From the sequence record NC_023610.1: a DNA stretch of 64,000 bases; one strand, given 5' to 3'. Below, piece after piece: positions 12,660-29,492 of the stretch. A program made the translations under genes and the position numbers. The first letter of the stretch is position 1. Each line of letters begins with the position of its first letter. Below the pieces are notes generated by a model. That model worked only from the letters and a program-made list of their open reading frames with translations, searched no databases and was not told the DNA's origin.

Positions 12660-14192
12660 TTATAAATCGAGCAGGAAGCGTGACGCAGACGTTTCTTCAC
12701 GACGGGTGTCGCGGCTACGGCTGTTATGGTCAATCGCGGCGGTAATCAGGTCGTCCATGTCGTTCACGATGTTTTGCAGGACACTACTGTCATTTGCTTT
12801 CATCGGAGACAACAGACCATCACAGAAGACCGGTGAGTTAAACGGTTCCATTGGACTACCGTCAACGGAGATTTTAATCAGCATGTCAGTAGTAACACGG
12901 ATGTTCACGGACATGTTGAACGGCAGCTGGTTGTTACGAGACAACAGTAGACCCAGGTCGGTTTCCAGGCGCAGTTCCAACGCCTGTTCGTAACGGGAGA
13001 TATCCATGTCACGAATCAGCGGCATTGCGTTGATAACGCTGCAACGAATTTGACCGTCGAGAGTTTCGTTGGTCATTTCGATGATGGCAGACGAGATGAA
13101 GTTGTTCATGACCAGAGCAGGTAAGGTCTTTGAAATCATCTCAGCGGCCATGGTCACGTTGTTCGCGCCACGCCATTCGTTGGTATCACCACGACGAACA
13201 CGGTTGGTGTCGGTATGACGAGCAGAGCCGAAGCCTACCATCATTGCCCGTACATCACGCGGCCAGTCAACACAGTCCTGGAATTCAGAGAATGTGATTT
13301 CGGCATTGCGTTCGTATTCGGTACGAGACAGGAAGTTACGGAACAGTTCATTACGGTGCAACTCGGTCCCACGCAACATCGCTGCTGCACGTTCGCTCGG
13401 GTTGAGGTCGTCCTGACGTTCCATTTCTTCGTCCATACGGTTATCGTCAGAATGACGGGTACCGCGTTCGTTCTGGTCAACGGTTTCTGCCGTTACACCG
13501 GTACGAATGATATCGGACAGGTAGTTCGCTGGGTTGTTGTGGATACGGCGGGCTGTCTTAAAATCACCGGACAGGTTCGTACGGGAATCGTTGTACGCAT
13601 CAGCGCCACCGAAACGTCCCACGGTTTGTGCTTCGGACTTCTGGAAGAAGATGTCCTGTGGACGAATCAGAGTATCATGGTTCTGTACGCCAATGAGGTT
13701 ACGTTCCGTTGCACGACGGCCACGGATAATGTACTCACTGGATTCCATACGGCTACCACGACGACGGCCGCGACCCGTTTCAATTTCTTCATCACGGATG
13801 GTGAACGTGTTGTTGATGTACAGTACGGTATCCGGGTCCATCTCGCCAGACAACGACAGGTCAGCTTTGTCAGTAAAGCCGGTCAGTACCTGGCGGCAGG
13901 AAGACCCTGCGTAGTCTTCGGTCAGGACCACGATGATGAACGCCAGACGTTCTTCATCCCAACCGTTGGCAATCTGGATAATGTCATTACGACCCACATC
14001 GGCACGCAGTTCCAGGATTTCACCTACGGCACGGGCGCAGGTGGAGGCATCCAGATTACGTCCGTCATTGGTTTCACGCAGGAAGGTTTCACGTACATGG
14101 TCAGAACGACGGTTCGGGACGTAGTGACGACCGTACTGGTCTTCTTGACCGGAAGTTACGTAGAAGGTTGCTTCGAGTACACGCGGTTCCAT
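12660..14192 (-). CDS. Probable nuclear import factor PicA/Imp1 (phiKZ gp69 position)
   Basis: 510 aa; directly downstream of the gp68-like gene. Call rests on synteny. Confidence 0.55.
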   Translation of the reverse strand: MEPRVLEATFYVTSGQEDQYGRHYVPNRRSDHVRETFLRETNDGRNLDASTCARAVGEILELRADVGRNDIIQIANGWDEERLAFIIVVLTEDYAGSSCRQVLTGFTDKADLSLSGEMDPDTVLYINNTFTIRDEEIETGRGRRRGSRMESSEYIIRGRRATERNLIGVQNHDTLIRPQDIFFQKSEAQTVGRFGGADAYNDSRTNLSGDFKTARRIHNNPANYLSDIIRTGVTAETVDQNERGTRHSDDNRMDEEMERQDDLNPSERAAAMLRGTELHRNELFRNFLSRTEYERNAEITFSEFQDCVDWPRDVRAMMVGFGSARHTDTNRVRRGDTNEWRGANNVTMAAEMISKTLPALVMNNFISSAIIEMTNETLDGQIRCSVINAMPLIRDMDISRYEQALELRLETDLGLLLSRNNQLPFNMSVNIRVTTDMLIKISVDGSPMEPFNSPVFCDGLLSPMKANDSSVLQNIVNDMDDLITAAIDHNSRSRDTRREETSASRFLLDL

Positions 14193-14207: not shown

Positions 14208-15761
14208 TTAGGAATTGAGTTTAATGTAAAAGTCTGCTAACACCTGGCGGAAATTCATCGGCACGATGTAGCAACTGTCTTCGACGCGAATCATCTCTGA
14301 TTCATCGTGGATAGCATCAACAACTTGTGGTGACCAGCAGTGGTCTGAGCACGCCGCCATGATTGCTTCAATTGCAATCACCGCCGGGTTCTTAGACGTG
14401 GTGCGGTTACCTTGTTTGTTCAGCTTCACGGTACGTCGATAAGGGAGCAACTTCTCCAGCGCCGAGTTCTGGTAATCTTTGGTTTGAACACGGCCGAATT
14501 TGTTGTCCCCTAGAGAGGGGTCACGGCGTCGAGCTTCGCTTGCGCCAATCAATTCTGCGATGGTGGAGAATCCCCACTCATGACAGACGACCTGTGCAAT
14601 CGACATCAGCTTGACCGTGCCATCTCGGTTGATGTATCCGTAAGAACGTGGCGTAACGACCGGCTTGGTGATTAACCCTGCCAGACGCATCTGAAACTCT
14701 TTCGGGTTGAAAGACTTCCTTGCCATGTTCATGTTGATTTGATGACGCACCATCTCCAGGTCAATGTCCGGCTTTATCGCCAGTGCATTCGCCCTGTCGT
14801 CTTCTGTATAGAAGTCGAAGATGGCTTCTGTTACCTCCGAAACGTTAGCACGTAATGTATGGTTCTCCGCTGTGGATGTATTGTCCTCTTCGTTTTTGCC
14901 ACCACGGTCTATCTCTTTATCGCGGACACGGAACCCCTGGCGTTCTTCTACGGCTTTGACACGCGTGTCAATGTAGTTGAACAAGTTCGCAATGACGTTC
15001 CCCGTCTTCTCCTGGTCATCGTCTTTGTGCGACAGACGAATCTGGGTCAAACGGTCAACAACGCATTGACTGAACATCCAGTCTGGCATGTCCAACGTCC
15101 CAATCCCTTGCAGTAACGTACTGGTGCCGGAAATGATTCCTTTGTGCTCCAACGTTGCACTCACGAATTCTTCCAGACGCTGATAAGCATTGCTCTCAGC
15201 CAGTACCGTTTGTTCCACTAACCCCAACGCCCGTTTCTCTGGGAACGTATCGGTTATTGAGTTACGCATCCCGAGGTATTCCCCCCAGATAGGTAACATC
15301 ACTTTCAGTACCACCGACAATGCTGTCAAGTCATGGTACTCAGGTTCCAGGTAGGTTTGCTCCACCCGGTGTCCATCGTTTAGGGTGGTCGCCAACGTAT
15401 CCGGGAAACGGATGTCGCTGTGCGTTTTCACCCAATGGCACATCAGGTCAACCGGATGCAATGCCATTAATTTTTTCACCACGTCCCGTACTTCACGGAA
15501 GCGGTATGTTTGGTTAATCGTGTTATTCAACGATTCTGCTGCTTCCTTAAACAACGCAAAGACTTCACGGGTTTCATCATCCCCCATCTTCTCACGCCAT
15601 TCCCAATAATTGTTAATGTCGCGGAAAGTATCGTTGATGTCGCCTGCCCGGATTTTCGAATAGTACCCAAGGTTGTAAACAATCTGTTCACTCCCATGCT
15701 CGATTATAACCGCTTTGGTTTCACCGAGCAGCTCAACATCAGAGCGGATTCTCATTGACAC
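14208..15761 (-). CDS. Probable nvRNAP sigma-like specificity subunit (phiKZ gp68-like)
   Basis: 517 aa, similar in size and position to gp68; early promoter upstream. Confidence 0.6.
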   Translation of the reverse strand: MSMRIRSDVELLGETKAVIIEHGSEQIVYNLGYYSKIRAGDINDTFRDINNYWEWREKMGDDETREVFALFKEAAESLNNTINQTYRFREVRDVVKKLMALHPVDLMCHWVKTHSDIRFPDTLATTLNDGHRVEQTYLEPEYHDLTALSVVLKVMLPIWGEYLGMRNSITDTFPEKRALGLVEQTVLAESNAYQRLEEFVSATLEHKGIISGTSTLLQGIGTLDMPDWMFSQCVVDRLTQIRLSHKDDDQEKTGNVIANLFNYIDTRVKAVEERQGFRVRDKEIDRGGKNEEDNTSTAENHTLRANVSEVTEAIFDFYTEDDRANALAIKPDIDLEMVRHQINMNMARKSFNPKEFQMRLAGLITKPVVTPRSYGYINRDGTVKLMSIAQVVCHEWGFSTIAELIGASEARRRDPSLGDNKFGRVQTKDYQNSALEKLLPYRRTVKLNKQGNRTTSKNPAVIAIEAIMAACSDHCWSPQVVDAIHDESEMIRVEDSCYIVPMNFRQVLADFYIKLNS

Positions 15762-15819: not shown

Positions 15820-15843
15820 TACTCGAGTCTTTTTAAGATTCGG

Positions 15844-15874
15844 AATAAACCGTCGCGGCCTTAGCCGCGACGGT
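15844..15874 (-). terminator. Intrinsic terminator
   Basis: 11-bp stem ACCGTCGCGGC/GCCGCGACGGT with a short U tail. Confidence 0.6.
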
Positions 15875-15915
15875 CATCGCTGTGCTGTCTTTGCTACATG
15901 CTCAGACGAAGGGAA

Positions 15916-16695
15916 TCAGAACGGGATGTCGGAATCGAAATCGCCGCCAGTGGCGCTACCACCACCAGTTTCGCCGCCCCATCCGCCGCCTGTAGCCTGC
16001 TGTTGAGGAGCTTGTTGTTGCTGGTTCTGTTGAGGTTTGCCCCAACCGCCGCCGCCCTGGCCGCCGTTCCCACCACCGTTCCGGCCGGAGAAGGCATTCT
16101 TGCGTTTGTTCTCTGAGGCAATCTTTACCTCATCGCGGTCCATGTAACCGGCGTCAATCAGACGGAAGAACTGACGTTCGAAGATTTTCGCTTTCGCACG
16201 TGCCACCAACATGGAGGCCTCGTTGTTCGGCAGGATAGAACCGTCTTTCGCCTGGTAGACAACGTCACGACCCGGCTTGAAGTAGAACTTCACGCTTGGA
16301 CGACCCTGTTGCGCCAGACCGAAGAACACGCCATCGTTGTCACGCATGATAACCAGTGACACGTCCAGCTCTTTCTTATCCAGCTTCTTACCGAACTTCC
16401 ACAGCACCATGTTACCCACTTTGAAGAAATCACGGGTACCAGAGGCAATGGCGTGGAGCTCGTCCAGAATAATCTGGAGGTTTTCCGGGTCGGTATAGAA
16501 GTCGATGCGACTGTTTTTATCATCGGTACGCAGGTTAACACCGATGTGCGGGATAGCCACTTTACCGTTTTCTTCGTAACGGAAGTCCCAGAACATGAAC
16601 GGTTGTTTGTCACCGCCATTCAGGGGGTCCGCGAACAGACGCATGTTCCAGTCATCCAGTAAACGCGTCGGTCGGTTCAGCTTGTTATCAGCCAT
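15916..16695 (-). CDS. ChmC-like nucleic-acid-binding protein (phiKZ gp67 position) with SSB-type acidic tip
   Basis: 259 aa: beta-rich core, G/Q linker and terminal DFDSDIPF; immediately upstream of the gp68-like gene. Confidence 0.6.
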   Translation of the reverse strand: MADNKLNRPTRLLDDWNMRLFADPLNGGDKQPFMFWDFRYEENGKVAIPHIGVNLRTDDKNSRIDFYTDPENLQIILDELHAIASGTRDFFKVGNMVLWKFGKKLDKKELDVSLVIMRDNDGVFFGLAQQGRPSVKFYFKPGRDVVYQAKDGSILPNNEASMLVARAKAKIFERQFFRLIDAGYMDRDEVKIASENKRKNAFSGRNGGGNGGQGGGGWGKPQQNQQQQAPQQQATGGGWGGETGGGSATGGDFDSDIPF

Positions 16696-17688: not shown

Positions 17689-18834
17689 TCAGTGCATTAC
17701 GCCGCGGACCAGGTTCACCGCGTGATTGATTCGTCCAGAAGCTTCTCCGGTACTTTGCAGGTGCTCGGTCAACAACCCGACCAGGTTCTCTTCCGTGAGC
17801 GGGGTAACCGCATTGCCCACGTTCAACAACTTGAAACCGGTGTTAACCTTGTTGTCTTTTTTACCGCCCTTCTCTATCGACGTTAAGATGTAATCCTGGT
17901 ACAAGTCCTGGAGTTCTTCGAGAATCGCCCGCATGGGGTCAGTGGCTCCGTGCTCCAGTCGGATAGCACTCCCTTTCGGTAAGTTCTGTCCTTCAATTAA
18001 CTGGGCAATGTCCGTGACAGTAAAGTCATAGACTGCGAGGGTCACGTACTTTTTCGCCAGCTGATTCTCAATAAACCGGAACTCGTGCTCCACTTTATTT
18101 CGGTAGGTAATGTCCAGGAACCCTTTTGCTTCTTCTTCTCCGTGCCCACAACGGTTCGTTGAACCGATGGAGATGTGTTTCAGAAAACGCGAGAAGGTAT
18201 GGACATGCCCGGAAAGGATTGCCATCGTTACCAGTTCAGACCATTTCTCTGCATCGTGATACGCAGGGGACTGGTGTCCTTGCAACTGGTGTAACCATGC
18301 CCCGTGCATAATAGACAGGTCAGCTTTAGCCAGGCCACGCGAATGCAACAGCTCTTTCGCTTGCTGATAAGTCTGTTCGGCTTCGGGGTGGTACTCATCA
18401 GGAATGTACAACACGTTCAGGTCGTACTCTTCCATGTAGTCCAGCGTCATGGTGGTGAAGTACTTTACATCACAGTTTGTTTCCATGGCTTCGTTCAACC
18501 AAAGGAAATGCTTTGACTGTCCGCGGTCATGGGAGCGCGTGCCTTCCAGGATACGCAGTTTGATGTTGTACTTTGCACACACACGCAGGACGTGCGCCAT
18601 GGCCATCTGCGCCGCGTAGACGTCTTCGTCTGACATGGTAAGCAAATGGTCAAAGAAGTCGCCAGGGATGAAACAGATGTCGTACACGGCGGTTTCGGGG
18701 CTATCCGGGAAATACCGGCGAACCGCAGCTAACGTTGACAGGGATGGCGTACGATTGTGCCCGAAATGTGGGTCACTGAACACAAAGATACGCAACCACT
18801 CAGAAATCGTCTTCAACAAAGTCGACGTCGCCAA
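17689..18834 (-). CDS. sbcD: SbcD/Mre11-like metallophosphoesterase nuclease
   Basis: Motifs SDPHFG, PGDFFD, GTRSHD, MHG and SGHVH; exact start uncertain. Confidence 0.85.
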   Translation of the reverse strand: MATSTLLKTISEWLRIFVFSDPHFGHNRTPSLSTLAAVRRYFPDSPETAVYDICFIPGDFFDHLLTMSDEDVYAAQMAMAHVLRVCAKYNIKLRILEGTRSHDRGQSKHFLWLNEAMETNCDVKYFTTMTLDYMEEYDLNVLYIPDEYHPEAEQTYQQAKELLHSRGLAKADLSIMHGAWLHQLQGHQSPAYHDAEKWSELVTMAILSGHVHTFSRFLKHISIGSTNRCGHGEEEAKGFLDITYRNKVEHEFRFIENQLAKKYVTLAVYDFTVTDIAQLIEGQNLPKGSAIRLEHGATDPMRAILEELQDLYQDYILTSIEKGGKKDNKVNTGFKLLNVGNAVTPLTEENLVGLLTEHLQSTGEASGRINHAVNLVRGVMH

Positions 18835-19396
18835 TTTCGAAATCCTCAGTCGCGTTAACTACCGTAACCCCTTTACTGCCCGGACCGAGTATCCCCGTCT
18901 TTGGTTTCCCGTCAAGGTAACCAAAGTCTTTCAGGATTTTGTACCAGTCCAATGCCCATTGTTTCTGCTGCGCATCACTTTGGGAGAGATTATTGAACAT
19001 CTCTTTCTGCGCACGGATACCGAATGACACCAGGCGGTTCATCTGCGCTTGCATCATACGGGTACGGGATTCGATTGAATGGGGGTTCCCTGTCTGACGC
19101 GTCTGTACCGTACCGGTAATGGGTGGCACGGTATACAGGTGGTTACCGGCTTTGTCCACAATCAATACTGGGCGGCGGGCGTTCTTTGACACTTCCGCTT
19201 CCCACATACGCAGGGCAGCCACCGAATCTTTCGAATCCAGGTCACCGGCGAGGTATGGAAGATAACGAGCACGGAAGATGTCGATGTCGAGTTTGGGTAA
19301 CTCTTCCATCGTGTACTCGGTAAGGATATAGTCAAGGAATGACGTATCCTCAGGTTCTAAGGGAGGCGTCAGTTCCACTTCTTCGGGTTCAGTCAT
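18800..19396 (-). CDS. Conserved hypothetical protein (phiKZ core region)
   Basis: 198-aa ORF overlapping its neighbours. Confidence 0.7.
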   Translation of the reverse strand: MTEPEEVELTPPLEPEDTSFLDYILTEYTMEELPKLDIDIFRARYLPYLAGDLDSKDSVAALRMWEAEVSKNARRPVLIVDKAGNHLYTVPPITGTVQTRQTGNPHSIESRTRMMQAQMNRLVSFGIRAQKEMFNNLSQSDAQQKQWALDWYKILKDFGYLDGKPKTGILGPGSKGVTVVNATEDFEIGDVDFVEDDF

Positions 19397-29117: not shown

Positions 29118-29492
29118 TTAAAACGGTTTGTCGCTTTCGTCCCACTCGAACGCCTTGACTCGAATACCCGTGCTTGTATAAGAAACGTCTACAATGGTTG
29201 CATCGGGATAATGACGTCGGATGACCGCTGTCTTGTACGACTCCCAGAGAGCCTGGGCGAATCGCTGGACATCGAGGAGTTCAACACTCCCCAAATCATC
29301 CAGGCGATTACGTACAATTTGAATCTGGTAACCGATTTCATCTAACCAGTCTCGGTTAGGGTGACGATGAGCATAAAGGAATGAGGACCACGCTACCGTG
29401 TGCAAGACGCGGTAGTGTGGGGAACGTAGTAGTCGCTGATGGGTTCTATCAACCCGATACGACGATGGTAGGACTATCCGAATGGTTCTCAT
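29118..29492 (-). CDS. Hypothetical protein, small-gene array member
   Basis: 124 aa, ATGA overlap. Confidence 0.7.
   Translation of the reverse strand: MRTIRIVLPSSYRVDRTHQRLLRSPHYRVLHTVAWSSFLYAHRHPNRDWLDEIGYQIQIVRNRLDDLGSVELLDVQRFAQALWESYKTAVIRRHYPDATIVDVSYTSTGIRVKAFEWDESDKPF

Follow-up and report, generated by a model that had tools for sequence, protein, structure and literature searches.

An SSB-type tail on the predicted Whirly core of ChmC/Imp6 from Erwinia phage PhiEaH1 suggests a candidate for the missing SSB of chimalliviruses

The ChmC/Imp6 protein of Erwinia phage PhiEaH1 carries, behind a predicted Whirly core, a disordered G/Q/W-rich linker and an acidic D-I-P-F tip of the kind that terminates bacterial SSB, and sequence comparison across related phages indicates tail exchange between ssb and chmC genes, which is new relative to the literature searched. 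We lean towards the view that ChmC behaves as an SSB whose core is Whirly, with the tip docking client enzymes, and that besides its role on mRNA it is a candidate for the SSB missing from chimalliviruses. Our literature search found no paper linking ChmC to SSB, and within the literature covered the putative SSB-type docking tip, the tail exchange and the SSB candidate to which they lead are all new.

The window is the whole stretch of DNA analysed, bases 1-64000 of the genome of PhiEaH1 (NC_023610), a 218-kb nucleus-forming jumbo phage. The features on which the argument draws are the following.

15916..16695, minus strand: chmC/imp6 ortholog CF95_gp015, an ORF of 259 aa plus stop codon, annotated as hypothetical
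16078..16674, minus strand: predicted Whirly/PUR-type nucleic-acid-binding core, gp015 residues ~8-206 (AlphaFold2 model, VIA-align)
15946..16077, minus strand: disordered G/Q/W-rich linker, gp015 residues 207-250, counterpart of the SSB linker (pLDDT 30-38; composition)
15919..15945, minus strand: C-terminal tip GDFDSDIPF, the last nine residues of gp015, counterpart of the SSB peptide MDFDDDIPF
15842..15875, minus strand: intrinsic-terminator-like hairpin, ~40 nt 3' of the chmC stop codon (RNA folding)
14208..15761, minus strand: nvRNAP subunit gp014, ortholog of PhiKZ gp68 by position and size (phrog_3209)
12660..14192, minus strand: PicA/Imp1 ortholog CF95_gp013 (BLASTP against PhiKZ gp69: E 5e-33, 26% identity, 476 aa)

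The gp015 reading frame is preceded by a GAAGG ribosome-binding site ~10 nt 5' of its ATG and ends in ...GGGSATGGDFDSDIPF, directly followed by the stop codon. The original prediction, which had singled out a G/Q/W-rich linker followed by GGDFDSDIPF-stop at positions 15916-16110 (the stop codon and gp015 residues ~196-259), described this end accurately, as the ORF reading and the composition confirm: 20 G, 10 Q and 2 W fall among the last 55 residues. In the AlphaFold2 model residues 207-259 are predicted to be disordered (pLDDT 30-38). The hairpin 3' of the gene consists of a 12-bp GC-rich stem and a 4-nt loop followed by UUUAUU, with -33.9 kcal/mol and a z of -4.7 that was equalled by 0/200 shuffles; a simple terminator scan gave no match there and folding shows the hairpin, and the Moabite ortholog has an annotated terminator at the equivalent place 3' of its gene.

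gp015 is the ChmC/Imp6 of PhiEaH1, a new member of a known family, and this identity, at first proposed from synteny, is borne out by homology as well. The protein falls into phrog_3284 (PHROGs, E 7e-62) together with PhiKZ gp67 and Goslar gp176, both of them experimentally studied ChmC proteins; a profile of 15 homologs aligned with PhiKZ gp67 in hhalign at 99.1% probability (E 1.9e-18), and the Xoo-sp14 homolog is matched by gp015 and by PhiKZ gp67 alike. The gene order is the same in both phages, with PhiEaH1 gp017, gp016, gp015, gp014 and gp013 corresponding to PhiKZ SbcD-like gp65, gp66, gp67 (ChmC), gp68 (nvRNAP) and gp69 (Imp1/PicA), and 15 other phages as well as contig L100 share the order of this conserved chmA-nvRNAP block. 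The nvRNAP subunit gp014 sits between chmC and picA, which is two genes downstream of chmC; PhiKZ gp68 is part of the nvRNAP (10.1101/2024.03.27.586873). A Pfam search of gp015 gave no match, PF00436 included, and sequence searches of gp015 and of the homolog P0009 against PDB chains returned low-complexity noise, with no SSB or Whirly match. The ChmC homolog of Erwinia phage pEa_SNUABM_54 (L010:532-1692) is annotated with 1413 nt and ~470 aa against the usual 230-275 aa, and could represent a fusion, an extended tail or an annotation error.

The ChmC proteins studied so far (PhiPA3 gp61, PhiKZ gp67 and Goslar gp176; PMC11077065) resemble gp015 in sequence, PHROG and genome position, and share with it the Whirly fold, a disordered low-complexity C-terminus and an acidic end. 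ChmC forms a homotetramer that binds ssRNA (58 nM) and, cooperatively, ssDNA (184 nM), is found on phage mRNAs by eCLIP, was picked up by proximity labelling from UvsX, and is required for mRNA export and nucleus growth, its knockdown resulting in smaller nuclei with less DNA (PMC11077065). In bacteria, E. coli SSB binds at least 18 clients through its last nine residues, which also contact its own OB fold; its condensates are driven by the linker and promoted by this intramolecular contact, and RNase HI acts more strongly on R-loops when SSB is present (PMC7584906).

The core of gp015 (residues ~10-200) is modelled at pLDDT 80-96 with a repeated beta-beta-beta-alpha topology, and VIA-align matches it to StWhy2 (Z 9.6), MRP1/MRP2 (Z 9.2), PBF-2 (Z 9.2) and Pur-alpha (Z 7.2), with unrelated folds at Z <= 6.0. 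Foldseek against the PDB found the same Whirly families only weakly (E 0.03-0.1), and the fold call therefore rests on VIA-align. Between the two folds that had been considered for the core, Whirly and OB, the model decides for Whirly and not OB (Z 9.2-9.6); having no Pfam match and a predicted Whirly fold, gp015 therefore lies outside the SSB family (PF00436). The best structural matches, plant organellar Whirly proteins (StWhy2, PBF-2/Why1) and trypanosome MRP1/MRP2, are tetrameric ssDNA/RNA binders, and no sequence similarity between them and gp015 was detected in the PDB chain search. To our knowledge, neither plant Whirly nor MRP1/MRP2 proteins carry an SSB-type linker and tip. Of the six basic residues that were mutated in PhiPA3 ChmC, gp015 keeps only two; in the alignment of 30 family members, the K30 column holds K in 27/30 and the column of PhiPA3 K59 holds K or R in 25/30.

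The likeness of the gp015 end to SSB is close. E. coli K-12 SSB (NC_000913) ends in NEPPMDFDDDIPF after a G/Q/P-rich linker, the SSB of the host Erwinia amylovora has the same end (MDFDDDIPF), and DDDIPF terminates 74 of 80 gammaproteobacterial SSBs. With DFDSDIPF-stop, gp015 is identical to the DFDDDIPF of SSB at 7/8 residues and likewise presents a free carboxyl terminus, and its linker contains GGWGKPQQ where the E. coli and Erwinia SSBs have GGWGQPQQ. Among the 940 ORFs of at least 60 aa in the whole 218-kb PhiEaH1 genome, gp015 alone ends in [DE][ILVM]P[FWYM].

The tip proved to be conserved among orthologs, with a DFDxxIPF end in 13/15 database homologs (40-92% identical), whose linkers vary in length and sequence. 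In addition to the database homologs, ChmC was sampled from 15 further phages, with endings such as YDEDIPF (PCH45), FDDTLPF (SPLA10), FDNDIPW (Moabite), FDNDVPW (FBKp24), SDDIPW (RP12), SEDLPF (FLC9), FDEDMPSF (PhiKZ) and FDDEIPNF (PhiPA3), and with degenerate tips in Goslar, Eowyn, 201phi2-1 and Noxifer. Across 30 family members, the terminal residue is F or W in 26, Pro stands at -2 in 23, and at least two acidic residues lie within the last eight in 29. F-D-x-x-[ILVM]-P-[FW] is present in every one of the 19 members of an enterobacterial-phage clade that is well supported on the core-domain tree, over more than 1.5 substitutions per site, and the tips of the PhiKZ-side clade vary (MPSF, IPNF, FDW, FVM). 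A chance origin of the gp015 tip is ruled out by its uniqueness in the genome, by the 30-member statistics and by the 19-member clade. The uniqueness and conservation of the tip thus mark it as a selected, family-wide feature, and it is in the PhiEaH1 clade that its sequence most resembles the bacterial consensus. The published ChmC tail was described as an N/G-rich region followed by an S/D/E-rich cluster, and only whole-tail deletion was assayed (PMC11077065); in the PhiEaH1 clade, by contrast, the linker is G/Q/W-rich as in enterobacterial SSB and the tip is near the canonical SSB peptide.

Beyond the tip, the tails of the PhiEaH1 clade are collinear with the linker and tip of E. coli SSB in the pattern GGWG-K/Q-PQQ ... 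RPQQ ... EPPMDFD..IPF, at z 4.7-11.8 against composition-preserving shuffles. For PhiEaH1 itself the whole tail reaches z 4.7 and the linker alone z 2.6, a value attained by 4/500 shuffles; the linker alone gives z 3.3-4.3 for several sister lineages and z ~0-1.5 for PhiKZ, PhiPA3, RP12, FLC9 and RTH11.

Two sister lineages extend this similarity to the DNA level. The tail of ChmC homolog P0011, a cluster of 17 member sequences, runs 16 residues past IPF, and a comparable extension occurs in 5/80 genomic SSBs. When the P0011 tail region was compared by blastn with 72,556 plasmids, only two matches were obtained, both within plasmid ssb genes (81% over 64 nt, E 7e-7), and at the protein level the plasmid SSB end ...DIPF-ASIGLQYGK... 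aligns with ...EIPF-APIGLQYGK... of P0011 at z 20 (0/3000 shuffles). The matching ssb (L111:2070-2585, plasmid NZ_CP085744.1) encodes a normal OB-type N-terminus and is flanked by genes for a head protein and a Shedu nuclease, a neighbourhood which suggests that the plasmid is a phage-plasmid. Together with five genomic loci (L051, L073, L077, L090 and L098), this plasmid gene (L111) defines a subclass of extended SSBs with 15-16 residues past DDDIPF, in which the terminal Phe carboxylate needed by normal SSB clients would therefore be masked. The linker and tip DNA of P0009, whose gene lies on a chimallivirus contig of 209 kb that shares this gene order with PhiEaH1, also matches ssb genes in blastn. 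From the P0011 and P0009 matches it follows that, at the level of sequence, tails have moved between OB-fold ssb genes and chmC genes of predicted Whirly fold. On the P0011 contig (L101:2062-3271), a 578-nt spacer and an extra 210-aa ORF, which has no Pfam match, separate chmC from the nvRNAP gene, where other phages have just a short spacer; this arrangement may have been left behind by the recombination event through which the SSB tail arrived.

The tail DNA of PhiEaH1, searched by blastn against the same 72,556 plasmids, had no ssb match and only two GC-rich chance matches, and its homology to SSB tails, which we consider likely, therefore rests on protein-level collinearity. The plain tips do give blastn matches of 26/26 and 35/38 nt to enterobacterial ssb 3' ends. 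Their synonymous-codon agreement, however, does not exceed a phage codon-usage null (P ~0.2 for PhiEaH1, P0008 and P0009), so that such matches are expected from the shared peptide, and recent horizontal transfer of the plain tip was rejected. The SSB-like architecture that the original prediction had assigned to ChmC is thus upheld and the parallel is closer than was proposed, because the tails of sister lineages are homologous to real SSB tails. Genome G002, labelled Pseudomonas lundensis I31 (L108, L109), carries, besides an extended-tail SSB, one whose linker and tip are of enterobacterial type (GGWGQPQQPQGGNQFSGG...NEPPMDFDDDIPF), and the label or purity of this assembly may be wrong.

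In both ChmC and bacterial SSB, a single-strand-binding core that oligomerises is followed by a disordered G/Q-rich linker and an acidic D-I-P-F tip, the tail drives condensates, and tails are exchangeable between the two gene families. The two proteins differ in the core, which is OB in SSB and, on our model, Whirly without PF00436 in ChmC, and in the published preference of ChmC for RNA over ssDNA.

PF00436, gp32 and Enc34-type SSB families were not found in PhiEaH1, whose annotation names no SSB, and PF00436 was not found in PhiKZ, PhiPA3, Goslar or PCH45 either. A 2016 survey found SSBs undetectable in phiKZ-like phages and suggested non-orthologous displacement (PMC4889955). Besides a replisome of its own, PhiEaH1 has proteins related to classical SSB clients, namely Rhc (gp177), a DHH phosphoesterase (gp089), UvsX, helicases and SbcCD. 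The first of these lies in the same record.

NC_023610 145041-146621, minus strand: CF95_gp177, annotated 'ribonuclease H', 526 aa, with an RNase H domain at residues 117-218 (L019)

By size and layout, with a long C-terminal portion after the RNase H domain, gp177 is likely the ortholog of the Rhc RNase H-clamp polymerase subunit of Goslar and PhiKZ. ChmC was recovered in a pull-down with Goslar Rhc, a DNA polymerase subunit (PMC13648698). Given chimalliviruses without a recognisable SSB, ChmC is therefore the best candidate for the non-orthologous replacement.

The reading that we prefer, in which ChmC acts as an SSB on a Whirly core, could operate as follows. The predicted Whirly core of gp015, probably tetrameric, would bind single-stranded nucleic acid, so that oligomeric ChmC could coat ssRNA and ssDNA in and around the phage nucleus. 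The linker would provide weak self-association and condensates, and the tip would be a short docking peptide tethering client enzymes to the coated strand, probably also folding back onto its own core as in SSB. Phage proteins offer a partial precedent, since the acidic tails of T4 gp32 and T7 gp2.5, the latter ending in an aromatic residue, recruit the phage's own polymerase and helicase and compete with DNA for the core. Unlike gp015, however, these proteins have OB-fold cores and tails that are not of the bacterial DDDIPF type, and their families were not found in PhiEaH1. Counting against the SSB role, the published data on ChmC favour RNA, given the eCLIP signal, the higher affinity for RNA and the mRNA export defect (PMC11077065). 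Some members of the family, Goslar among them, also have degenerate tips, yet Goslar ChmC still requires its C-terminus (PMC11077065).

As for the clients, they would most likely be phage-encoded nuclear enzymes, such as Rhc with the DNA polymerase, UvsX, the RecJ-like DHH protein, or helicases. Whereas bacteria conserve the tip of their SSB strongly (PMC7584906), the PhiKZ-side tips vary, which suggests co-evolution with a few phage-encoded partners over mimicry of a host interactome and places phage clients ahead of host clients. The same tips, differing mutually and from the bacterial one, make it unlikely in our estimation that the tip instead mimics the host SSB C-terminus and thereby recruits or sequesters, as the original prediction proposed, or helps to import host SSB partners at the phage nucleus, for which ExoI, RecQ, PriA, the chi subunit, UNG, RNase HI and topoisomerases would be candidates. 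The phage nucleus also excludes most host proteins, and the main text describing the PhiPA3 ChmC pull-down reports ChmB, RNA polymerase subunits and ribosomal proteins and names no classical SSB client (PMC11077065). Host capture does draw support from the PhiEaH1-clade tip, which keeps 7 of the last 8 residues of the host MDFDDDIPF while the rest of the tail drifts, and from the circulating lineage in which the ChmC tail was replaced by that of a phage-plasmid-type SSB, a protein presumed to cooperate with host enzymes. PhiPA3 ChmC is, moreover, partly cytoplasmic (PMC11077065), and ChmC/Imp6 binds the import factor PicA/Imp1 in a system that imports at least one host enzyme, TopA, into the phage nucleus (10.1101/2024.03.27.586873).

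Less likely again is a tip that serves self-regulation only, binding the basic Whirly face within or between tetramers and so tuning affinity and condensates with no heterologous client. Deletion of the C-terminus abolishes ChmC condensates with RNA binding kept in the PhiPA3 protein, and the authors of that work took the S/D/E-rich end for an 'electronegative cluster' with a tuning effect on RNA binding (PMC11077065), both of which such a tip could accommodate, as it could the condensate-promoting intramolecular contact of E. coli SSB (PMC7584906). Autoinhibition by charge, however, leaves unexplained both the strict terminal [ILVM]-P-[FW], with its frequent Pro at -2, and the interchange of complete SSB and ChmC tips, EPPMDFD context included, on unrelated folds; in SSB, besides, both roles coexist.

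More doubtful still is the compound proposal that ChmC is the missing replicative SSB and that its tip, displayed on a protein bound by PicA/Imp1, is a signal that captures selected host SSB clients and takes them to or into the phage nucleus. If this were true, import selectivity would partly reuse the bacterial SSB interaction code. Least probable of all, the tip could be a handle that holds ChmC at the nuclear shell via PicA/Imp1 (gp013) or ChmB, as the nearby picA gene, the direct binding of PhiKZ gp67 to Imp1 (10.1101/2024.03.27.586873) and the loss of shell localisation in PhiPA3 ChmC without its C-terminus (PMC11077065) might imply, but Imp1 is reported to form with two copies of gp67 a ~120 kDa complex that survives gel filtration (10.1101/2024.03.27.586873), which points to a more extensive folded interface and a rearranged oligomer and not to a weak peptide contact, and Goslar ChmC lacking the C-terminus still forms shell puncta (PMC11077065).

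Nucleus-forming jumbo phages conserve ChmC, which is essential to them and highly abundant, but work on it has so far addressed only its role on mRNA, and its tail has been viewed as a generic condensate-forming region. An SSB-type tail would provide a concrete candidate for the SSB missing in the 2016 survey of phiKZ-like phages, and would separate condensation by the linker from docking by the tip, two functions that the published whole-tail deletion confounds. The tail also represents a clean case of module shuffling between unrelated single-strand-binding folds.

Two further PhiEaH1 reading frames have acidic-aromatic ends. A putative gene, the unannotated 124-aa ORF at 29118-29492 (minus strand) in the gap between gp028 and gp029, ends in ...EWDESDKPF and has no PHROG match. 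CF95_gp018 (18800-19396, minus strand, 198 aa; phrog_34423), which belongs to the same conserved block as chmC, ends in ...EDFEIGDVDFVEDDF and is one of only three ORFs of PhiEaH1 with a strongly acidic-aromatic ending.
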